DNA of 58,372 nt from Basidiobolus meristosporus CBS 931.73 (taxonomy: Eukaryota > Fungi > Basidiobolomycota). The translations under genes and the position numbers were made by a program. Location: NCBI GenBank assembly GCA_002104905.1, contig MCFE01000557.1:1-58372 (forward strand), written 5' to 3'. The notes under the pieces are model-generated. The model had not been told where the DNA came from and searched no databases. It saw nothing but the letters and a program-made list of their open reading frames with translations. Positions 47,279-58,372 of the stretch are shown here, piece after piece. How positions within the stretch are numbered: position 1 is the stretch's first letter; every line of letters starts with the position of its first letter.

Positions 47279-47385
47279 CTGTGTAGTAGCCAATATCAGA
47301 AACATGCGTAGAAGTGTGTAGTGCCCAATATCAGAAACATGCGTAGAAGTGTGTAGTGCCCAATATCAGAAACACTAACCCTAAC
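47279..47385. repeat. 35-bp tandem repeat (about 2.7 copies) ending in CTAACCCTAAC
   Basis: Unit GTGTGTAGTGCCCAATATCAGAAACATGCGTAGAA at about 47279, 47314 and 47349; last copy is cut at 47374 and followed by an 11-nt C-strand telomere-like motif. Confidence 0.85.
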
Positions 47386-48117
47386 ACTGTTGCAGGATAC
47401 ACGGAATCTTGAGTGAGCACTCAAAACATGATTCGATATTATTCAGAGTGTGACGATAGTCGCTACAGTTGATGAGAGGTGCTAAAATATCCACGCAATT
47501 CTTATGAACGCTTGCTCAATAGCCGAATACCTAAGCTCTTTGACAAGTTATTAAACATCTACCAAGGATTTAGGTAGTAAGATATGGGCTAGCTCTTTGA
47601 ACTCACGATGTTTTGGAGGTTATGAAACCTTATAAACCCGTTTCATAGTGTATACATTGATCCCTTCATGAAACGTTCTTACCTTTCTTAAACTAACTGG
47701 TGGGTAGTTCAACCTGTCTAGTCCTCTAACTCGCATTTAGGACCGTGCCAAATCTTACATCAAGTTGGAGATATTACATAATTTACGTAATACACCAATT
47801 GGCTGACATATATGGATTATCGATGTTTGATGGAATGGTTGGGAATATTGAAACTGGCAGTGGGTGCTTGAAATCGCTTCATAGCACTTGTTACTTAGCG
47901 CCTAATAACCCTTTCAGCTCAATAAGTCTCTATGGCATATATTGTTGTAAATCTTGCTTTGATATTGCAATATTAACATTTGCTTGGGTCCTAGTATTTG
48001 AGCTTTATCCTTTTTGGTCCAAATCTGTAGCCAGGATATACTTGCAATATGCAATCATCTAATATAAGAACATGCAAATAGAGTTGTATAATATTAAGTC
48101 TCCCTTCCTTTAGTTTC

Positions 48118-48450
48118 TGTTGTAAAAATTCGTAATTCCACCTAAATATTCACCTAACTTAGTCACTTAGATCATTACCCTCAAATCCTAGAGAATACTG
48201 ACCAAATTCCTTGTTGGGATTTACTTAGAATATTTACCCAGAACATGAAAATTAGATATGTTGTCCAAACAGCCCCAAACTTTGCACACACGCTCTTGGG
48301 ACCCTCCTTAACCTATTCTACGTGCTTGTAATGCCAAGACCATGTAAAAGTATAAATACTACTTTTACATTCAATAAATCATTAAGTGAAGACCAAATAA
48401 TGTACTTGTTCTCCCAAATCACTTCTAATATCTCCAAGACTCTTACAACA
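48118..48450 (+). mobile_element. Solo LTR (family A), 333 bp
   Basis: TGTTGTAA...TTACAACA termini; 5-bp TSD GTTTC on both sides. Confidence 0.92.
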
Positions 48451-48591
48451 GTTTCAACTCCCTGAGGTTGCTCTAGATGCTGTTCTACAGGCTAAAGATC
48501 CCCAGCTAGGTTTTGAGTTGCTGAACAAAGTTCTCTTTGTACAGACTCTGACAGATTCCAATGAACAGCTATATCTCCCTCATCAATCTGT

Positions 48592-48653
48592 TGTTGTAAA
48601 AATTCATAATTCCACCTAAATACTCACCTAACTTAGTCACTTAGATCATTACC
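48592..48653 (+). mobile_element. Truncated LTR (family A, first 62 bp only)
   Basis: Matches the start of the 48118 LTR up to GATCATTACC, then switches to TTAGGGG and a retroelement 3' end. Confidence 0.88.
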
Positions 48654-51228
48654 TTAGGGGAGGGAAAGTCACCAAGTTGGTGAAATCTTTATTTGAGTTA
48701 AGAACTAATCTAAGTACAAATAAAGAAGCCAATTCAGAGGTCTAGAACCTCTCTAATAAGTAATCTAATTTATGTTTTGTTTCATCTCTAATGTTTGTTT
48801 CAATAAAGTAAAGCTCATCAGGGGTAAATATAAAATTCAGGGGTTTTGGGGGAAGTACAAATTGTAGATGTTTCTGATCAATATAATCCAAGACTGGAAT
48901 CCAGCCTGGGATTAGGTGTAGTAGGAAAGGTGTGTGGACTTGTAAGTAGCTCTGCCACATAGATGTTAGATGGTCCTGAGCCAGTAGTCTTGGTTTCTCT
49001 GCTTTTTGAAGTTTTGAAGCAAGCTCTGTTACTACAGCAGAGCCAACCAGGGTGTGCCAGCAAGAAGATTTCAGGGAGGAGTTAGATTGAAGCCATTGTT
49101 TGATGGAGGGGTTATGTGATTTCTGAAGTTTGACTAGGAAGGAAGCCTGGAGATAGATCATTTGGATTTGGTATGGGTAGAACCCAAAGGCTCCATCAGT
49201 TGCATGGATATAGGGAGATACTGGAAGATAAGGTACCAAGGATCTGATACACTGATGGAGAAATTTATCCAGGTGGTGAAGTTCTCTGGAGGTTAGGGGT
49301 ATAATGTGGAGACCAAATTCAAGTACTGGCAGTACATACTGCTTCAGAAGTATAGGGATCTTTTGAATTGGAGTGTCTGGAGTGACTACTACCAGAAGCT
49401 TTTTGAGAGCCTGTTGGGCAAGACGGATCCTATTATTCAGGTGGAGCTTTGAGCCAATCCCATGTTGACAAAACAGCAGACCTAGATATATTGCAGTTTG
49501 TTGTGGCAGAATGCTAGTGTTCTGTATAGTTGTAGTGCACCCAATTGGGACTGTCTTGGAAATTGAGAGTGAGAGGTTGTTGGCAGCCAAGTACTTCTCA
49601 ATGATGGCAGTGTCTGCTATGGGATTAGGAGTAGCAATCTTGATATCATCTGCATAGAGAGTTAGTAGTGGATAGGGAGAGTCTGGTGAGGGGCCTTTTG
49701 GAAATAAAGGAAAGTTGTGTAGGAATATCACAAATAGTAAGGGACCTAGTACAGATCCTTGGACTACTCTATTTGGAACCTCATAGGTCTCTGATGTGCA
49801 ACTTGGATGCAAAATTTTGGCTGAGTTCTCACAAAATAGAGAACATGCAAGAAGGGTCATTGGTAGTGTGGTAACAGCTAATAGCTTTCTCCAAAGCAGA
49901 GCTCTGTCCACAGAGTCAAAGGCTTTAGTAATGTCAAACAGAATGGTTGGCAATGAGAATTGAAGTGAATGATCATGGCTTAGCACTACAGCCATATCCA
50001 AGGAGAATTTGGGCAAGAAGCCAAACTGAGAAGGATGGAATGGATATAGTTGAGATTGCAAGGATCTTGCTATTATAAGCTCAAAGATTTTCCTGCAGGT
50101 TGGGAGGAGTGAAACTGGCCAGTAAGAACCTGGGAGTGAGTGTTTCCCCTTCCCTTTGTATAAGGGTATTACATTTGCCTGTGACCAGGCCTTTGGGGTA
50201 GTCAATTGTTTGGCACAGATAGAGTAGAATGGGATAAGTAAGTGACTCATTTTGGAGTAGCACACCTGGAGTAGATTGTAGGTAATCAAGTCATGTCCAG
50301 GTGCAGTATTTGCAGGAAGCTTCTATAAAATTTTCTCCAGAAGCTTGGCTGAAATCAAAATTGGAGATGTTGGACTGCTGGATATGTTACCAGTATGGTA
50401 GAAAGGAGGAGTGGGATGCATGGATGAATCAAAGAATATAGGGGCCAGTTTGTCTGGTGATGGTGTACTCCTTGCTTGCAGTCTCATGGCTTTGTATACT
50501 TTTGATATGGACCTTGTGGTGGCATTCATATTTACTAAGGGCAAGGTATCCATGATATGAGCCCATAATCTAGTATACTCAGTGATCTGTAGTGACTTGG
50601 AGTAGGAGATTGCGCTTTCCAGGAGGTTCTGTGTTTTTGGGTTAGGGAAACATAGGTAGCTGGAATTTAAGGCAGAAATGATGGACTTCCATTTAAGTTG
50701 GTTTGCAGATGGCTTTTGGTAGGACTTGGTGGGCAGGGCCAGACAACCAGTGATTATGATGAAATGCTGGTAAAATAGCCATAATGCATTTATATCATCA
50801 CAAATCCATGCAGGTAAGCTGGGAAATGCATATTCTGTAAGCAAGGATAGGTAGTTGGCAAAGTTGTGTGTCTGTGATATTGAAGCTTTGGCTGGCAGGA
50901 TTGTAAATGGCTGAAGAAGGGTGCTAATTGGTAGGGTTTTTCTGGCAGAAAGGATAATATGTATTGGCTTGTGATCAGATTTCTCTAGTGAACCACAGCT
51001 GATATCCTCTGGAATGCTTGTAACCTGGTGGATGTACTGTAAGGCAGCTGGAGTAGCTGTTACCCAGTCAACACAACGTTGAGCTTGCTGAGTGTTTACA
51101 GTGACCAGATGGTTTTGTTGGAGGAACTTTGTAAAGTGCTCCTCTTGGGTTCTAAGTCTGGATGAAATAGTGGTGATATTTTCAGGGTGGGGAATATTTT
51201 TATCTCCCACTACCATACAAGGGATTGA
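48654..51228 (-). mobile_element. 5'-truncated non-LTR retrotransposon piece 1 (partial APE endonuclease + RT ORF2 with one premature TAG)
   Basis: IPCMVVGDKN, CVDWV, SDHKPI (APE C-half); LEKIL*KLPANTAPGHD (TAG 50323-50325, in frame); VIPLYKGKG..PVSLL, QFGF, FDITKAFDSV, QGSVLGPLLF, YADD; ORF ends 48742. Confidence 0.93.
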
Positions 51229-51842
51229 TAGGGGGGGAGACAGTGACCAACAGGTGAAATCTTTATTTCAGTTGAAACAAAGAAGCCAGCGCTACTGTTG
51301 TAGCTTTGATACAAGAGTATGTAGCTGAGGGGATATTGTAGGTAAGTTAATAAGAAGTGATGACAGCTCTTCAGTGCTCAAGACACTGTTCAGTGGGAAG
51401 GGGGGTAGCAAGAGAGGTAAGAATGACTTGTGAACAACATCAATGAGGGGAATGTGATAAGGATTGATATTCATCATAAAGGGAGTGTGATGCTGCAGAT
51501 ATTGCTGCCAAAGATCTGTCAAGTACTTCAGGTAGGCCAGCTTGGGTTTTTCTGACTGCAGAATATAGTGAGCAAACTTCTTGACTTCAGGATCTCCAAG
51601 TATAGTTCTCCAGCAGGAGCCAGGTGTTGTGTGGTGTGTTCTCTTCCAGGCCTTAATCAGTGGGTTGTTGCAGTTGTGAAGTCTGAGGTATAATCTGGTT
51701 CTAAGGTAGAGAAGTCTGATCTTATAGGGCATAAACCCAAAAGCACCAAGAATAGCATGTCTGTAGGGGCATTCAGGCAAATGAGGCACCAAGGAGGTAA
51801 TGCACCATACTGCAAACTTGTCAAGCTTAGTGCAGTCTCTAG

Positions 51843-52192
51843 TGTTGTAAAAATTCGTATTTTCCACCTAAATATTCACCTAACTTAGTCACTTAGATCA
51901 TCACCTTCAAATCCTAGAGAATACTGACCAAATTCCTTGTCGGGATTTACTTAGAATATTTTCACCAAAATACCAGGTACCCAGAACATGAAAATTCTCA
52001 AAGTTGTCTAAACAGCCCCAAACTTTGCACACATGTTCTTGGGACCTTCCTTAACCTATTCTACGTGTTTGTAATGCCAAGACCATGTAAAAGTATAAAT
52101 ACCACTTTTACATTCAATAAATCATTAAGTGAAAACCACATAATCTACTTGTTCTCCCAATCACTTCCAATATCTCCAAGACTCTTACAACA
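51843..52192 (+). mobile_element. Solo LTR (family A), 350 bp, inserted in piece 2
   Basis: TGTTGTAA...TTACAACA; TSD TCTAG; clearly homologous to 48118-48450. Confidence 0.92.
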
Positions 52193-52427
52193 TCTAGAAG
52201 TAAGAGAGAGAAGTGGTAAGCCAAATTCCAGGACAGGGAAGACAAACTGCTTGAGTAGAAGAAGGCAGTTGGGAGCTGAAGTTGTAGGAGGAGTAACAGC
52301 CAGTAGCTTGTGGAGTGCCTGTCTTGCCAGGATAATTCTCTTCTTCAGGTGTGCTCCAGAGTCTAGTCCAGTAGGAAGGAAAGGAAAGCCAAGATATGTA
52401 GCAGAAACCTGAGCAGGTAGAGTGGAG

Positions 52428-55400
52428 TGTTGCAATATTCTGAGGAGTATTGGAAGTGATGTGGAGAACTAGAAGATTTACATGTTATTCACTTGTAGAT
52501 TTATTGATCAAAAGTATAGTATTTATACTTTTGATAAAGTAGAGGAAACAAACGTGTAGAGTTTGTTAAGGAAGGTCCCAAGAATATGTGTGCAAAGTTT
52601 GGGGTCTTTTGGATGACTTTGAGAAAAATAATAATCTGGGTACCTGACAATTTGGTGAAAATATTCTAAGTAAATCCCGACAAGAAATCTAGTCAGGACA
52701 GAATGCTAATCACAGAATAAGATCTATGTGACTAAGTTAGCATGAATATTTAGGTGACAATTCAATAATTACAACACTCCCACTCAACAAAATATTCATG
52801 AGTAATAAATACATATTGTGAGTGTGCAATCTGTAATAAGCGTATAAGATTTAACTGTTTTGCATACTGGACTAATATATTATCCAAAGGTGTATGCATT
52901 TGTGTTCAACTTAATAGAACAAGTAACTTGGAATTCAGCATGCATATCTACTTAGTAATATGCCTAAAAATCTGAATGATCTGATCATAATACTTATCAT
53001 CAACTTTGATCAGTTGTACGGGCTTGAATAATAAGCTGAGTCTAATTGACAGATCGTAATAATAGTATATAGCCTCTGGGCTATTCAATGCTTCTTATTT
53101 GAGCAAAATTGACCCACTTTTGGTCAAGTTAAGGTTTTGTCATTTACAGCAGATCTGGAGTTTCCTTATTTCCGGCCAACAGTCTAATCCATTTAGACAA
53201 CTTCACTGTGTGTCCATATTAGGCTCAGGGACAGTTACTTCCATCATATAGATGCTATATGAGGTAAAAAATAGTGACCTACTTTGGGTCAAGTTAAGGT
53301 TTTGTCATTTACGCCTGATCCGGATTATCCTTGTTTCCTGGCACTGTGGCACATATAACATGGCCAAAAAAAGAAGGTTTTTGCTCAACTCTGAGCTGGG
53401 ATGGCCTGCTCCCACTTGAACCACGTCTGTTTAGTGATTCAGATCCACAAATATGATCTAGAATGGTCATCTTTGTCTTCTTTAAATAGCAATAACTTTC
53501 TTTGGACTGATTACTTCATATGCGGTAGATTCAAAGTCCATTTGCTTCTTGATTTACCCAGTTTGGTATTGGACAACACCATGGGTTGTTTGGTAGCTAT
53601 TCTTAGAGTGCTTCTACTGATTTGGATTGATACAGCTGCTTTTGTCTTATCAGAATATACTTGTAGAATAGAGATTGGCGCTTTTCCAGAAGTGAGATTC
53701 TCCTTAACAAGGGCTTTGATTATCCTTATTCTCCTGATAGTTATTTTCAACCTTGAGCTCGGTTTCCAAGGCTAACTGATCTTCTCAGTGTCTTCAGAAT
53801 CCATAAAAAAACCATCTGGTTGATCCTTGCACCTTTTTCTTTCAGCTCCATAGACAGCAGACATCAAGACTTCTGCACTAAATAATCTGTTCCAATATAT
53901 ACTACAATATCTAACAGATCCTGTTGAAGTTTCAAGGCTCTTCTGGGGTTTCTAGCTTGAGAACTTCGTACAAGAGGCTCCATAGAACATATTTGCATTG
54001 CCAGATAGTCCAAATATGGCCTACATAAGTTTTGGCACCATTTGGGAAGTACCCTAGTTTGCGGTAGTAGTATTTTCCATTTTTTCTTCTTTTCTTTTTC
54101 TGCTGATGACCCAGGGATAATTCCTTTTGTGGGGTGGTTCTGGACTTCCTTGCAGGTGGGACCACGGGGTTTTTGAGCACAAGAGTCTCCATGACATCAT
54201 TGTTCCATAATATCTGACTATTTGAGAGTGAAATAATCAAAATCGGCATCCACTTAGATCATTCATAACTTTTGATAGAGTTGACCAAATTTGATCAAAT
54301 AAACTGCATTTGATAGCTAGCTTCATCAATACTTCGGTATCAGACTCCAATATATCAGTATTTTGAGTTGCAGAACTTGGCGGTGACTTGATCAATCAAA
54401 ATTCTTTTGATCTGATCCAGAGAAGTTAAATATCACCAAGTGTTTTCTCCCACTGTAATAAGTGATATATATATAACAAGTATAAAGTACTGTGTTATCT
54501 TCTGAGTGGCTCTTAGCTGTGTACTGACCAACTGTTGCTTGGTTGTATACTCCAATCAGGCTTGCAATTATATGCTTCACTCCTTTGGCTGGCGGTAGAA
54601 TCTTCATGAGTTGATTTTGCTAAATTTGTATAATACTTTCTCCCACTGTTTTGAGACTTAAACAGAGTGATAGCACGTCTAACAGCTCCATATTTAGCTC
54701 CTGGTACACTGGTTTCAGTATCAAAACACTTGATACAATTATAGCATTCTTCTAATGGATTGTGTAGTACATATCCGTACTCCAGGTGGATATATATGTA
54801 TTATACATCATTGGGATCCTTACAATTCAGGAAGCTTGTTTCTGAGATCTTTTTCCATCAGTAGATAGTCCAGAATGGCGGCTAACAGCTCCAGTATTTG
54901 CATTCTCAGCTGTATTTTGAGTGGCAACAGATTTTTGGTAAAATCCTCCTCCGGCAATCATTAATAATGATCTAACTTTTTTTTTTTTTGCAATTCAGGA
55001 TAATATCCTATCCAAGAGCTCGTCTAACAGTCAATTGGGGTCATATGAATACATATTGCAGTATATTTCATTGTAGATCTGGACTCTCAATTGCTGGAAT
55101 TACGCAATTTTCTTCAGTAGTGGTAGAGCACCAACATACTATATTTCTTGACACAATTACATGCCAGTTTGATTGACTCTTCTTCATAACTAACTTGGAT
55201 AGTTACTGAAGGCATCTTTTGAAGGCAAGGCCTTCTTCTCCACAGCAATATCCTCATAACCATAGTCCTTTAGCAGCGGTAGTCTTCTTTAACCTTAGCA
55301 GAGCAATAGTGCGGAAAGTCTTTCTCCAGACTAGCAGAAAAGGATCCAAAGCATAGTAGACACCAAGAGGACAGCAAGCTCGGGGCTCATAACCTGTTGC

Positions 55401-55743
55401 AATATTCTGAGGAGTATTGGAAGTGATGTGGAGAACTAGAAGATTTACATGTTATTCACTTGTAGATTTATTGATCAAAAGTATAGTATTTATACTTTTG
55501 ATAAAGTAGAGGAAACAAACGTGTAGAGTTTGTTAAGGAAGGTCCCAAGAATATGTGTGCAAAGTTTGGGGTCTTTTGGATGACTTTGAGAAAAATAATA
55601 ATCTGGGTACCTGACAATTTGGTGAAAATATTCTAAGTAAATCCCGACAAGAAATCTAGTCAGGACAGAATGCTAATCACAGAATAAGATCTATGTGACT
55701 AAGTTAGCATGAATATTTAGGTGACAATTCAATAATTACAACA
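52428..55743 (-). mobile_element. Ty1/copia-type LTR element with two identical 349-bp LTRs and a decayed ~2.6 kb interior (non-autonomous)
   Basis: LTRs 52428-52776 and 55395-55743; TSD TGGAG; PBS GGTTATGAGCCC at 55394-55383 (complementary to the tRNA-iMet anticodon arm); PPT GAGTGGGAG at 52785-52777; no long ORF. Confidence 0.92.
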
Positions 55744-55942
55744 TGGAGTTCTCCAAGTTGATGGGAGAGCCCAAAGGTACTGTCTTTGCAATGGAAAGCT
55801 GGAGATTATTCTTCTGCAGATACTGGTGGATGGTCTGGGAGTCTTGTTGCACATTGGAGGAGGATATTCTGATGTCATCAGCAAAGAGAGTAACCAGGCT
55901 GTCAGCTGAGAGTCTTGGGAAGTCATTCAGGAAGATGGCAAC

Positions 55943-56970
55943 TTAGGGTAGGGGAGGGAAAGTCACCAAGGTAGGTGAAATCTTTATTTGAATGCAGACA
56001 AGTCTAACTCCAAATAAAGAAGCCAGCTGGGAATAGAAGATTCCCAAAGTAAACACTAAGTTGAATATGAATAAATCTAAGCTAAAGTTAAGGCAGTATC
56101 CCAGAGTACACTGGAGTTCAGGTTCATGGGGGAGTGAAGTAGATAAGCTTGAGAGATATAATAATCTTTGAGGAAGTGGGTAACAGCAGGTGAAGGGGAG
56201 TTTTTGATAAGTGAAGTGAATCTTGAGAGCAGAGATTCCTCTAATGAGAAGGTCTTGTAAACTGGAGAATCAGGAAACTCTTTAAAGGCATGGTCAGTAG
56301 GTTCCCAGTAAAACTGGTCAGAGACATTTTGAGAGAACTCTTTAGCAATACTTTTGTCAAGTACTACCTCCAGAGTGTGATTGTTGATAAATCTCATGTT
56401 AACAATCTTGGATAAATTGTAACCTTGTTGCTTGAGATACATCCTATGCTCAGATATAGGAATGAACTCCACATTGGCAAAGTAGCAGACAGCCCAGTCA
56501 GTAGCAGGAGGCAAATCAGAAGTAGCAGGAAACTTTCTTTTAGTCTTGGGAGGAGCAGCAGGATGTCTTGAGGAAGCAGGAGCAGGCTTTTTGACAGCTT
56601 CAGAGTAGGAAGAGTGAGCAGGAGCAGATGATTCTTGGGGAGTCTTGTTGACAGGAACAGCTGGCAGAGAGACAATAGATTCTTGCAGATCAGAGAAGGC
56701 AGAAAACAGCTTTTGAACTTGTTTCTTGAGTAAAGCATTTTCAGCTTCAACAAGTGCAAGCCTTTCCTCAAGGAAGGAAATCTGAAGGGAATGGAGTGAA
56801 GGCATAAGAAATAAGAAGAAGAGGGTAAGATGGGGTGGGTGGGAGGGAAAATTAGCAGGGAGAAGAGAAGGAAGGAGCAAAAATTCCAGAAGTCAGAATT
56901 TATAGATGGATGGACAAGGGTAGATGGATGGATTATTCCTGGGTTAGGAAAATTAGCAGGGAGAAGAGAA
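55943..56970 (-). mobile_element. ORF1-only terminal retroelement unit, copy 1 (1020-bp period)
   Basis: Shares the 3' terminal module with the RT pieces; preceded by TTAGGGTAGGGG; contains an intact ORF; near-identical to copy 2. Confidence 0.82.
56077..56805 (-). CDS. Putative non-LTR ORF1 (Gag-like) protein, copy 1, ~242 aa
   Basis: MPSLHSLQISFLEERLALVEAENALLKKQVQKL coiled coil; SYSEAVKK; Pro/Ala linker; alpha/beta domain CYFANVEFIPISEHRMYLKQQGYNLSKIVNMRFINNHTLEVV. ORF is real; function is inferred. Confidence 0.7.
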   Translation of the reverse strand: MPSLHSLQISFLEERLALVEAENALLKKQVQKLFSAFSDLQESIVSLPAVPVNKTPQESSAPAHSSYSEAVKKPAPASSRHPAAPPKTKRKFPATSDLPPATDWAVCYFANVEFIPISEHRMYLKQQGYNLSKIVNMRFINNHTLEVVLDKSIAKEFSQNVSDQFYWEPTDHAFKEFPDSPVYKTFSLEESLLSRFTSLIKNSPSPAVTHFLKDYYISQAYLLHSPMNLNSSVLWDTALTLA

Positions 56971-58151
56971 GGGGAGGGAAAGTCACCAAGGTAGGTGAAA
57001 TCTTTATTTGATTTCAGACAAGTCTAACTACAAATAAAGAAGCCAGCTGGGAATAGAAGATTCCCAAAGTAAACACTAAGTTGAATATGAATAAATCTAA
57101 GCTAAAGTTAAGGCAGTATCCCAGAGTACACTGGAGTTCAGGTTCATGGGGGAGTGAAGTAGATAAGCTTGAGAGATATAATAATCTTTGAGGAAGTGGG
57201 TAACAGCAGGTGAAGGGGAGTTTTTGATAAGTGAAGTGAATCTTGAGAGCAGAGATTCCTCTAAGGAGAAGGTCTTGTAAACTGGAGAATCAGGAAACTC
57301 TTTAAAGGCATCGTCAGTAGGTTCCCGGTAAAGCTGGTCAGAGACATTTTGAGAGAACTCTTTAGCAATACTTTTGTCAAGTACTACCTCCAGAGTGTGA
57401 TGGTTGATAAATCTCATGTTGACAATCTTAGATAAGTTGTAACCTTGTTGCTTGAGATACATCCTATGCTCAGATATAGGAATAAACTCCACATTGGCAA
57501 AGTAGCAGACAGCCCAGTCAGTAGCAGGAGGCAAATCAGAAGTGGCAGGAAACTTTCTTTTGGTCTTGGGAGGAGCAGCAGGATGTCTTGAGGGAGCAGG
57601 AACAGACTTTTTGACAACTTCAGAGTAGGAAGAGTGAGCAGGAGCAGATGATTCTTGGGGAGTCTTGTTGGCACGAAGGGTTGGCACAGGGACAATAGAT
57701 TCTTGCAGATCAGAGAAGGCAGAAAAGAGCTTTTGAACTTGTTTCTTGAGTAGAGCATTTTCAGCTTCAACAAGTGCAAGCCTTTCCTCAAGGAAAGAAA
57801 TCTGAAGGGAATGGAGTGAAGGCATAAGAAATAAGAAGAAGAGGGTAAGATGGGGTGGGTGGGAGGGAAAATTAGCAGGGAGAAGAGAAGGAAGGAGCAA
57901 AATCAGAAGTCAGAATTTATAGATGGATGGACAAGGGTAGATGGATGATTATCTGGGTTAGGAAAATTAGCAGGGAGAAGAGAAGGAAGGAGCAAAAATT
58001 CCAGAAGTCAGAATTTATAGATGGATGGACAAGGGTAGATGGATGGATTATTCCTGGGTTAGGAAAATTAGCAGGGAGAAGAGAAGGAAGGAGCAAAAAT
58101 TCCAGAAGTCAGAATTTATAGATGGATGGACAAGGGTAGATGGATGGATTA
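56971..58151 (-). mobile_element. ORF1-only terminal retroelement unit, copy 2, with 5' tandem repeats, capped by telomere
   Basis: Starts GGGGAGGGAAAGTCACC at 56971; ORF 57097-57825; 95-101 bp repeats up to the telomere junction. Confidence 0.82.
57097..57825 (-). CDS. Putative non-LTR ORF1 (Gag-like) protein, copy 2
   Basis: Same length as copy 1 with scattered substitutions (e.g. FYWEPTDH vs LYREPTDD). Confidence 0.7.
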   Translation of the reverse strand: MPSLHSLQISFLEERLALVEAENALLKKQVQKLFSAFSDLQESIVPVPTLRANKTPQESSAPAHSSYSEVVKKSVPAPSRHPAAPPKTKRKFPATSDLPPATDWAVCYFANVEFIPISEHRMYLKQQGYNLSKIVNMRFINHHTLEVVLDKSIAKEFSQNVSDQLYREPTDDAFKEFPDSPVYKTFSLEESLLSRFTSLIKNSPSPAVTHFLKDYYISQAYLLHSPMNLNSSVLWDTALTLA

Positions 58152-58153
58152 TT
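57866..58153. repeat. 95-101 bp purine-rich telomere-proximal tandem repeat, about 3 copies (another 1.2 copies at 56846-56970)
   Basis: GGAAAATTAGCAGGGAGAAGAGAAGG... at 57866, 57961 and 58062; each full unit ends CTGGGTTA, which with the next unit's GG reads GGGTTAGG. Confidence 0.92.
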
Positions 58154-58372
58154 AGGGTTAGGGTTAGGGTTAGGGTTAGGGTTAGGGTTAGGGTTAGGGT
58201 TAGGGTTAGGTTAGGGTTAGGGTTAGGGTTAGGGTTAGGGTTAGGGTTAGGGTTAGGGTTAGGGTTAGGGTTAGGGTTAGGGTTAGGGTTAGGGTTAGGG
58301 TTAGGGTTAGGGTTAGGGTTAGGGTTAGGGTTAGGGTTAGGGTTAGGGTTAGGGTTAGGGTTAGGGTTAGGG
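58152..58372 (+). repeat. Telomere (TTAGGG)n, right chromosome end
   Basis: Uninterrupted to the window end except one TTAGG variant near 58206; G-rich strand runs 5'->3' toward the end. Confidence 0.99.

Follow-up and report, generated by a model that had tools for sequence, protein, structure and literature searches.

Telomere-capped, one-way arrays of non-LTR retroelements with a predicted AP endonuclease at contig ends of the fungus Basidiobolus meristosporus

Introduction

How does a contig come to end in a stack of retroelements that all point the same way and carry a telomere on top? The question is raised by the last 10 kb of contig MCFE01000557.1 of Basidiobolus meristosporus CBS 931.73, analysed here as a stretch of 58,372 nt (the window). 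Telomere-targeted retroelements bear on the relation between retrotransposons and telomerase and on the healing of chromosome ends. The observations cover the anatomy of the array, the folds of the encoded domains, the shared 3' tail, the junction statistics, the clustering and polarity at contig ends wherever these could be checked, and the conservation in relatives. Taken together they suggest that the contig end is probably a chromosome terminus, built by telomere-targeted non-LTR retroelements through end-primed reverse transcription and then capped by telomerase.

Results

Anatomy of the array

As a preliminary description of this DNA had it, four retroelement pieces follow one another head to tail on the minus strand, with their 3' ends facing the centromere, beneath a 221-nt TTAGGG cap (Table 1). 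Successive pieces are joined through 0-2 telomere units, and the junction strings reported then were recovered in the window: TTAGGGG at 48654, TAGGGGGGG at 51229, TTAGGGTAGGGG at 55943 and GGGG at 56971, the last of which joins the tail of copy D to copy C without TTA. Inspection of the window revealed no poly(A) at these junctions. At the proximal border a TIR element is broken off at 48653 and, as also claimed, never resumes distal to the array; a full 333-bp copy, with a 5-bp duplication (GTTTC), lies at 48118-48450.

Table 1. Features of the terminal array and its proximal border in the window.
Feature	Position	Strand	Evidence
Proximal breakpoint: a 333-bp TIR (MITE-like) element of which the first 62 nt remain	48592-48653	+	97% to 48118-48179
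LINE-A copy, 5'-truncated within the endonuclease domain (ORF2 residues 122-949)	48654-51228	-	RVT_1 1.1e-17
LINE-B fragment 1: 3' tail and C-terminal part of ORF2	51229-51842	-	LINE-B tail type
Nested 350-bp TIR element, target-site duplication TCTAG	51843-52192		92-97% to the 48118-48450 copy
LINE-B fragment 2	52193-52427	-	52% to LINE-A ORF2 residues 689-769
Nested 3,316-bp composite TIR element, target-site duplication TGGAG	52428-55743		100% direct repeat
LINE-B fragment 3, 5'-truncated inside the RT	55744-55942	-	RVT_1 0.0011; 48% to LINE-A ORF2 residues 622-692
ORF1-only element, copy C	55943-56970	-	Tail 55943-56030; ORF 56077-56811, 244 aa
ORF1-only element, copy D	56971-58151	-	ORF 57097-57831; 98% to copy C over 300 nt
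Terminal (TTAGGG)n tract, directly on the 5' end of copy D	58152-58372	+	Sequence

The LINE-A copy (3' tail 48654-48737) has a single in-frame stop (50323-50325), and at the amino-acid level its ORF2 is 95.8% identical to that of locus L016, which is intact (949 aa); at least 40 copies on other contigs match LINE-A at 95-98%, mostly 97-98%. The second piece, 51229-55942, had been taken for a retroelement, which holds for about 1,045 nt of LINE; the remainder consists of two nested insertions of TIR-type DNA transposons. All three LINE-B fragments align colinearly along ORF2, fragment 1 having 42% amino-acid identity to LINE-A ORF2 residues 767-927. The composite TIR element ends on both sides in the same MITE-like module, more than 300 bp long, and its empty site is present in other LINE-B copies, where 52422 is joined to 55744 and 3,321 nt are skipped (12 and 11 read-derived contigs). 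Loose ends at 55941 indicate that other LINE-B copies extend further 5'. That every piece is cut at its telomere-facing end is correct for LINE-A and LINE-B, but copy C may be complete, because its 5' end is the commonest 5' end of the ORF1-only family. In copy C a 5' monomer of 101 bp is present about 1.2 times (from 56846), and copy D has about three such monomers of 98-101 bp (57863-58151). The G-strand of the elements is G-rich, with a GC skew of +0.30 to +0.40 versus 0.02 in unique DNA.

Element families and their proteins

The window contains two autonomous LINEs (LINE-A and LINE-B) together with a non-autonomous element whose sole ORF is a homologue of ORF1; the rest of the genome adds a SINE-like element of about 540 nt and a fifth short family. 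In the autonomous LINEs, ORF1 precedes ORF2, which encodes a domain of AP-endonuclease fold and a reverse transcriptase; ORF1 is open for at least 378 aa and shares its frame with ORF2, from which a single stop codon separates it, and ORF1 homologues lie upstream of ORF2 in loci L062 and L067. The ORF1-only protein, modelled as a coiled coil with an RRM-like domain, is homologous to LINE-A ORF1 (BLASTP 2e-12), in line with the ORF1-only partners proposed earlier.

Pfam identifies the reverse transcriptase as RVT_1 (1.5e-20) and detects no REL domain in ORF2; the nearest solved reverse transcriptase is human L1 ORF2p (1.5e-11, versus 1.9e-5 for R2). Pfam and PDB profile searches returned nothing for the LINE-A endonuclease domain, and a relative (P0001) gives a weak match to PF14529. 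When modelled with AlphaFold2 (pLDDT 84.8), the N-terminal 215 aa of ORF2 adopt an APE/ExoIII fold (Foldseek 7e-11 to APE1, TM 0.6-0.67; matches to APE1 and ExoIII at E about 1e-10). The endonuclease motifs N, GDxN, D and SDH are kept across relatives at 36-55% identity, and every member that aligns at the metal-binding Glu of AP endonucleases has Asp there. Fold and motifs indicate that ORF2 carries a predicted N-terminal AP-endonuclease (EEP) domain with catalytic residues, as the original assignment to an APE-RT LINE family implied. A conserved domain of this fold would be unexpected if it were never used, which counts against priming on chromosome ends without nicking; TART and TAHRE also keep their endonuclease.

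A shared 3' tail

The five families have only their tail in common, a 3' module in which a 10-bp hairpin, whose closing pair covaries, is followed by a second hairpin of 5 bp (UCACC/GGUGA), then a C-run and a single CCCUAA unit. Its end (C-run plus CCCTAA) is complementary to the telomeric G-strand. The tail 16-mer GGTGAAATCTTTATTT has four matches in the window, all on the plus strand (0.10 expected by chance), and 1,739 in the genome (1,589 forward and 150 reverse; control 0), while a telomere 30-mer occurs 7,145 times forward and 73 times reverse; the genome has at least about 240 assembled telomeric contig ends.

Distribution and junctions

On the few contigs where this can be checked, the tails cluster next to contig ends and lie in one orientation, consistent with the subtelomeric confinement and uniform polarity expected from the preliminary description. 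All tails lie within 22 kb of the telomere on a 345-kb contig (C1) and within 10 kb on a 264-kb contig (C2), and their orientation is uniform inside each of 60 loci. All 87 upstream neighbours that could be identified are co-oriented, and they are truncated at many different points; the 17 mapped LINE-A neighbours, for instance, break off at 16 distinct positions. Some stacked fragments are as short as 35-70 nt. Terminal tracts of about 21-45 units (127-271 nt) rest directly on an element 5' end in all 20 loci having such a tract.

Among 141 junctions, exactly one telomere unit is found at 90 (64%), none at nine, two at 20 and three to nine, the maximum, at 21, with one junction unparsed; at least one unit is present at 131 of the 140 parsed. 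The junction G-runs vary from 2 to 10, the upstream sequence ends in GGG at 44 of the 141, and poly(A) occurs at none. Relatives in other samples, with 44-65% ORF2 protein identity, show this tail too, along with CCCTAA units and head-to-tail joining. The junction units had been attributed to brief telomerase capping, an explanation that fits less well: exactly one unit stands before 90 of the 141 tails irrespective of the upstream sequence, and the relatives are alike in this, so that the single TTAGGG is better read as copied from the 3' end of the element RNA.

No gradient from proximal-old to distal-young copies emerged in adjacent pairs, the distal copy being nearer its closest copy in 17 and less near in 15, a test confounded because near-identical whole ends sit on different contigs. 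Loci L004 and L009, for instance, share a terminal junction, nearest copies reach 99.9% over 3.7-3.9 kb, and some junction types recur between loci.

Discussion

How the array may have formed

From these observations we infer how synthesis is primed, that the single junction unit stems from the RNA, and in which order the steps take place, as follows. The C-rich, telomere-like end of the element RNA would anneal to the G-rich 3' end of the chromosome G-strand, mostly at ends stripped of all or nearly all telomeric repeats, and the LINE reverse transcriptase would extend the chromosome end so that the 5' end of the element becomes the new terminus. This terminus could then be reused by another element or by a template jump, or be capped by telomerase, and repeated cycles would yield one-way stacks of full-length and 5'-truncated copies. 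It is possible, if doubtful, that the whole constitutes a mixed system of an early-diverging fungus, in which a telomerase cap is combined with AP-endonuclease LINEs, ORF1-only and SINE-like elements copied onto bare ends as repair, their RNAs ending in a telomerase-template-like C-run plus CCCUAA. If true, the system would represent a living stage between telomerase-only telomeres and retrotransposon telomeres of the Drosophila type, and the elements would help to maintain the ends.

A rather unlikely course, resembling that of TRAS/SART, is that the AP endonuclease nicks a TTAGGG unit of the G-strand, at the base of the terminal tract or in an existing inter-element unit, whereupon ordinary target-primed reverse transcription follows. 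The retained fold and catalytic motifs, the telomere units at nearly all parsed junctions and the missing age gradient agree with such nicking, and array structure alone cannot separate insertion at junction units from terminal addition. However, internal tracts are at most nine units long and mostly one, against about 21-45 at the termini, and insertion at random positions within the terminal tract is therefore rejected. Nine junctions, including that at 56971, lack any TTA and follow arbitrary sequence, stacked fragments may be a mere 35-70 nt, the TIR element interrupted at the proximal border never resumes, and the metal-binding Glu is replaced throughout the group, all of which speak against nicking.

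It appears improbable that recombination between chromosome ends is the main way in which the arrays grow and spread, through break-induced or telomere-attrition-induced replication starting at short interstitial telomere units and with retrotransposition rare. Recombination from such units is documented in MoTeR arrays (PMC8381367). Here every junction supplies a telomere unit, and the near-identical ends on different contigs and the recurring junction types are of the kind that recombination would leave. Yet it cannot make the many truncation points, and it leaves the variable G-runs, the junctions without a unit and the sharing of nothing but a tail by five families unexplained; recombination may well contribute without explaining how the elements got there. 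An assembly artefact, that is a chimeric or collapsed repeat contig representing no real chromosome end, is highly improbable. In its favour are the 97-99% similarity of the repeats, the ease with which the 101-bp monomers are miscounted in assembly, and the finding of the sequence only in runs from the sample that was probably assembled (in no RNA run of the sequencing-run search), which yielded just short contigs. Against it, the same architecture recurs with differing junctions on dozens of contigs and with diverged relatives in contigs of other samples, and similar junctions between a tail and an element are seen in the short contigs built from reads.

End-primed addition could be examined further in this material, as some 1,700 tails and hundreds of ends offer many natural junctions from which to derive a priming rule, and in a culturable fungus end addition could be tracked directly.

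Comparison with known systems

The array resembles HeT-A, TART and TAHRE in its one-way, head-to-tail arrangement at chromosome ends, where 3' ends point to the centromere, in the presence of a gag/ORF1-only element alongside elements encoding a reverse transcriptase, and in the variable 5' truncation and healing of broken ends; as for HeT-A, placement is exclusively telomeric on the few contigs where exclusivity was checked. The Drosophila elements, however, have poly(A) and no telomerase repeats, whereas the fungal ones have a telomere-like tail and a TTAGGG cap. TRAS and SART of insects (R1 clade) are likewise AP-endonuclease-type LINEs targeting telomeric repeats, and TRAS is oriented relative to the G-strand as the fungal elements are. 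They lie inside long (TTAGG)n tracts, with poly(A) and repeats on both flanks, while here 0-9 units, mostly one, are found on the 3' side only, some junctions have none, poly(A) is lacking and the 5' side borders directly on either the next tail or the terminal tract.

Athena and Coprina share with the present elements short 3' stretches complementary to the telomeric G-strand and 5'-truncated, one-way, terminal copies that alternate with or are capped by telomere repeats. Theirs is a Penelope/telomerase-like reverse transcriptase without endonuclease, as opposed to a LINE with ORF1 and ORF2, an APE fold and an RVT_1 domain nearest to L1 ORF2p. In stringent-type LINE/SINE pairs such as UnaL2/UnaSINE1, as in the present elements, a common conserved 3' hairpin is followed by a short repeat without poly(A), which implies that the reverse transcriptase recognises the tail. 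UnaL2 and UnaSINE1, however, occur scattered through the genome and end in a repeat other than the telomere unit. Endonuclease-independent L1 insertion at dysfunctional telomeres, in which a LINE reverse transcriptase primes on a deprotected chromosome end, is a by-product in mutant cells, as against a dedicated family with a telomere-like tail.

Closest in host are the fungal MoTeR, FoTeR and Cnl1, which also form telomeric or subtelomeric arrays with short telomere tracts between copies, no poly(A) and, in MoTeR2, a non-autonomous partner. These belong to the CRE clade and have a single ORF with a restriction-like endonuclease C-terminal to the reverse transcriptase (PMC12857005), in contrast to the N-terminal APE fold, the separate ORF1 and the SINE-like and ORF1-only elements sharing one tail described here. 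The system thus appears to differ from known fungal telomeric non-LTR elements in its predicted endonuclease type, in line with the preliminary description, where the combination was not recognised from fungi, and our literature search found no report of an AP-endonuclease-type telomeric LINE at fungal chromosome ends. Features so far seen apart are joined in it. Like TRAS/SART and TART it has a LINE of the AP-endonuclease type; with Athena/Coprina it shares a 3' end that lacks poly(A) and is complementary to the telomere; like HeT-A it includes a dependent ORF1-only element. To these it adds a SINE-like element with the same tail and coexistence with telomerase repeats.

Structure of the terminal array

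The retroelement array beneath the telomere is a system of telomere-targeted AP-endonuclease LINEs and of partners that depend on them. Reading of positions 48000-58372 bore out the layout proposed in the preliminary description, four polar pieces under the telomere, together with the junction strings at their borders and the absence of poly(A), of which there is none anywhere in the array. The sense strand of all four pieces is the minus strand, and one common module (the tail) opens every piece at its centromere-facing end. A 16-mer of this module occurs four times in the window, in a single orientation, against 0.10 occurrences expected by chance. The sequence interrupted at the proximal border indeed never resumes, as from 48654 onward TTAGGG and the LINE-A tail stand in place of the remainder of an element with terminal inverted repeats (TIR). 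The cut in this element and the loss of its rest fit terminal truncation followed by healing, and not insertion. No ORF2- or ORF1-like sequence was found in the other 48 kb of the window, which carry ordinary eukaryotic genes.

On the strand continuous with the telomeric G-strand all four pieces are G-rich, with a GC skew of +0.30 to +0.40 and 16-40 runs of at least three G versus 2-8 of C, while the skew is 0.02 in neighbouring unique DNA and 0.04 in a nested DNA transposon. The G-rich array strand agrees with an asymmetry between strands that has been described in telomeric retroelements (PMC10088271). Centromere-proximal to the array lies a 35-bp tandem repeat, the final copy of which ends CTAACCCTAAC; a CCCTAA-like match within this repeat was considered as telomere sequence and is taken as chance.

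Features at the telomeric end of the window
Feature	Position	Strand	Target-site duplication
35-bp tandem repeat, three copies	47280-47384		
CCCTAA-like match in tandem repeat	47373-47384		
TIR element, complete 333-bp copy	48118-48450		GTTTC
TIR element, first 62 nt of 333 bp	48592-48653		
Piece A, LINE-A copy	48654-51228	-	
In-frame stop in piece A	50323-50325		
Piece B, LINE-B fragment	51229-55942	-	
TIR copy nested in LINE-B	51843-52192		TCTAG
3.3-kb TIR copy nested in LINE-B	52428-55743		TGGAG
Piece C, ORF1-only element	55943-56970	-	
5' monomers of piece C	56846-56970		
Piece D, ORF1-only element	56971-58151	-	
5' monomers of piece D	57863-58151		
Terminal TTAGGG repeats, 221 nt	58152-58372	+	

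The elements and their proteins

Piece A contains RVT_1 (Pfam) and its protein, broken by a single in-frame stop, is 95.8% identical to residues 122-949 of an intact 949-aa LINE-A ORF2 (locus L016). No endonuclease family was detected in LINE-A ORF2 by Pfam, the first 215 residues being unrecognised, and a six-sequence profile of the N-terminus found no match among PDB sequences. An AlphaFold2 model of these 215 residues, built on six relatives (pLDDT 84.8), matched APE1 and ExoIII in Foldseek (E ~1e-10, TM 0.6-0.67). As modelled, the N-terminus is thus an AP-endonuclease (APE) fold that is visible by fold search only. The N, GDxN, D and SDH motifs are kept among ORF2 relatives that are 36-55% identical, while the metal-binding Glu of AP endonucleases is replaced by Asp (motif LIDVK) in every group member aligned there (alignment A1, comprising L016:3719-4438, minus strand, and relatives). 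An ORF1 of at least 378 aa lies upstream of ORF2 in the same frame with one stop between them (L016:4439-4441), an arrangement whose sequence suggests readthrough or termination-reinitiation. The LINE-A ORF2 starts without an AUG; a relative on contig L067 has an AUG directly after the stop (L067:2112-2120).

Piece B represents a second family, LINE-B, with 42-52% protein identity to LINE-A. Its remnant of ~1,045 nt forms three colinear fragments, interrupted by a pair of nested insertions of the TIR family, which has TGTTG...CAACA ends and 5-bp target-site duplications, and read-derived contigs of other LINE-B copies run beyond its 5' break. In the larger insertion two MITE-like modules, each longer than 300 bp, 100% identical and directly repeated, enclose 2.6 kb of unrelated DNA; a Pfam search of the ORFs of this copy gave no match. 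The insertion moved as a single unit, resembling a composite transposon; the empty site is seen in read-derived contigs of other LINE-B copies.

Pieces C and D are ~97% alike and are copies of a ~1-kb element encoding solely a 244-aa protein, which is homologous to the C-terminal domain of LINE-A ORF1 (BLASTP 2e-12; six-sequence alignment). The model of this protein shows a long N-terminal helix, a disordered linker, a beta-alpha-beta-beta-alpha domain and C-terminal helices, with a low overall pLDDT of 59.5 and only residues 102-178 above 80; the RRM-like character of these residues (Z 5.6-8.3, middling) is suggestive only. The 5' ends of both pieces are tandem monomers of 98-101 bp, which across contigs (C560, C369, C616 and C110 among them) number from ~1 to more than 12. 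The 5' ends of the element, including that of piece C, gather at one monomer phase (...GAGAAGAGAAGG), perhaps marking a transcription start inside each monomer.

The tail is common to five element families and reads, on the plus strand, a G-run, AGGGAAAGTCACC (or AGACAGTGACC), a short loop, GGTGAAATCTTTATTT, a variable stretch and AAAGAAGCC. RNAalifold predicts a first hairpin of 10 bp (UCUUUAUUUG / CAAAUAAAGA), with a covarying closing pair (G-C 11, A-U 5, C-G 2, G-U/U-G 2), and a second, invariant hairpin of 5 bp (UCACC / GGUGA); as most pairs never vary, the structural support is modest. An AAUAAA in the 3' strand of hairpin 1, ~35 nt short of the end, could from its position also serve as a cleavage signal. 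In LINE/SINE pairs of the stringent type the two partners have a common tail, which is recognised by the LINE protein. The sharing of the tail between autonomous and non-autonomous elements would by analogy fit such recognition here. A SINE-like element of ~540 nt (for example L041:2555-3100, minus strand, and many other loci) also carries the LINE tail; A-box- and B-box-like motifs (GGTTCAAATCC) were spotted in its head by eye only, and ARAGORN called no tRNA in it. Among the upstream neighbours at junctions this element is the most frequent (31/140), and none is present in the array of the window.

Distribution across the genome and in relatives

The genome contains at least 40 copies of piece A (95-98% identity) and well over 40 complete copies of the ORF1-only element (96-99%). 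Almost all matches are on the plus strand, and many lie close to the high end of the contig concerned. Forward and reverse counts are 1,589 and 150 for the tail 16-mer (reversed control zero) and 7,145 and 73 for a telomere 30-mer. This forward excess shows that contigs end in telomere at the right, a polarity which the tails share. All 5 tails of C1 (345 kb) lie within 22 kb of the telomere and all 10 of C2 (264 kb) within 10.4 kb; those of C21 and C22 behave likewise, and reverse tails lie near the low end of their contigs (C27, C80, C1246, C1213). Tail orientation is uniform within each of the 60 loci fetched. Hence the anticipated subtelomeric clustering and uniform polarity hold across C1, C2, C21, C22, the window contig and the 60 loci, the set to which the distance-to-end statistics apply. 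The 30-mer count corresponds to ~240 or more telomeric contig ends in the 89.5-Mb assembly, almost all of them right ends, which suggests that chromosomes are very numerous or that copies were assembled separately, and that the assembler tends to orient contigs one way.

In a protein search five ORF2 relatives stood at 44-65% identity, well apart from the next matches, generic APE-RT LINEs at ~25-30%. Their contigs come from other sequencing samples and show the same organisation, that is ORF1, one stop and ORF2 in the same frame, followed by a tail with two hairpins as here and a C-run with 1-2 CCCTAA units; one of them (L062) holds three elements head to tail, joined as in this array. The shared organisation and joins indicate that the system is older than the 97-99% copies found here, and has been maintained across diverged lineages. 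The end of the public contig for one relative protein, P0001, is Illumina adapter (L061:3826-3852), an artefact of that assembly. An assembly artefact as the origin of the array itself is unlikely, as dozens of contigs, and other samples as well, show this architecture.

Junctions and the proposed route to the chromosome end

Among 141 distinct tails within the fetched loci, no telomere-like unit precedes the tail in 9 junctions, one unit in 90, two in 20 and three to nine in 21, with one unparsable. The window itself has a unit-less junction at 56971, where the tail GGGG follows a monomer ending ...AGAGAA. The G-run that adjoins the core of the tail is 2-10 long; ahead of the units, the upstream sequence has GGG as its last bases in 44 cases and G as its last base in 77. 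Identifiable upstream neighbours are co-oriented without exception (87/87) and all belong to these element families (SINE-like 31, ORF1-only 25, LINE-A 19, LINE-B 12). Break points are scattered (for LINE-A neighbours, 16 distinct positions among 17 mapped); two recurrent ones, at SINE-like position ~537 and at one ORF1-only monomer phase, look like natural 5' ends. Further junction variants were seen in short contigs derived from the only reads that contain the sequence; these belong to four runs, none of them RNA, of a single sample that is probably the one assembled. A gradient from proximal-old to distal-young elements was not detected, the distal member being closer to its nearest copy in 17 adjacent pairs and less close in 15, a comparison confounded by near-identical ends on different contigs.

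In all 20 loci that reach a terminal tract, the tract (127-271 nt) sits directly on an element 5' end. Terminal tracts comprise ~21-45 units versus at most nine, usually one, internally, which excludes random insertion into a normal terminal tract. The fact that a single unit is found whatever lies upstream, also in diverged relatives, is most simply read as the unit being derived from RNA: it would be part of the 3' end of the element RNA (C-run plus CCCUAA) and be copied along. The remnant of brief telomerase capping invoked in the preliminary description as source of the units is therefore not required, one unit being the rule regardless of upstream sequence.

We favour reverse transcription primed by chromosome ends stripped of all or nearly all repeats. 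A G-rich chromosome 3' end that has lost its repeats, or nearly so, would anneal to the C-rich end of the element RNA, as the GGG enrichment at upstream ends suggests, and reverse transcription from that end would add the element. The uncapped 5' end of the new element may then be extended either by telomerase repeats or by a further element, the latter possibly through template jumping in a single event. The nine unit-less junctions point to priming on non-telomeric ends, with an overlap of at most a G or two.

The same array structure would be expected from TRAS/SART-like nicking at a telomere unit, either at the tract base or in an existing junction unit, and the conserved endonuclease fold speaks for this route; as the only route, however, it is at odds with the junctions that lack a unit, with the stacks of tiny fragments and with the TIR element truncated at the proximal border. 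A probable contributor is recombination between ends by telomere-attrition-induced replication, a process demonstrated in MoTeR arrays (PMC8381367), since some ends are near-identical on different contigs, but it cannot generate the variety of truncation points and G-runs. Such end segments are found at loci L004 and L009 (also L006), with an identical terminal junction and 99.9% identity across 3.7-3.9 kb; they are allelic copies or stem from a recent exchange between ends.

Comparison with known telomeric retroelements

Telomere-associated retroelements include SART/TRAS, Zepp, Tx1_Acar, MoTeR1, Athena, GilM/GilT and the Drosophila elements (PMC10088271). The fungal cases in the literature searched, with partial coverage, are MoTeR, FoTeR and Cnl1, which belong to the CRE clade with a restriction-like endonuclease (PMC12857005); subtelomeric arrays of Cnl1 reach 80 kb (bioRxiv 10.1101/2021.08.11.455996). 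Within partial full-text coverage without Repbase, the literature on telomeric retrotransposons of Basidiobolus/Zoopagomycota gives no account of such a system. The present system is not of the MoTeR/Cnl1 type. It fails the defining features of endonuclease-less Penelope elements, a Penelope RT and no endonuclease, although it works in a like mode. Similarly, poly(A) and the absence of telomerase repeats, which define HeT-A/TART, are not features of this system, but its mode of working is like theirs.
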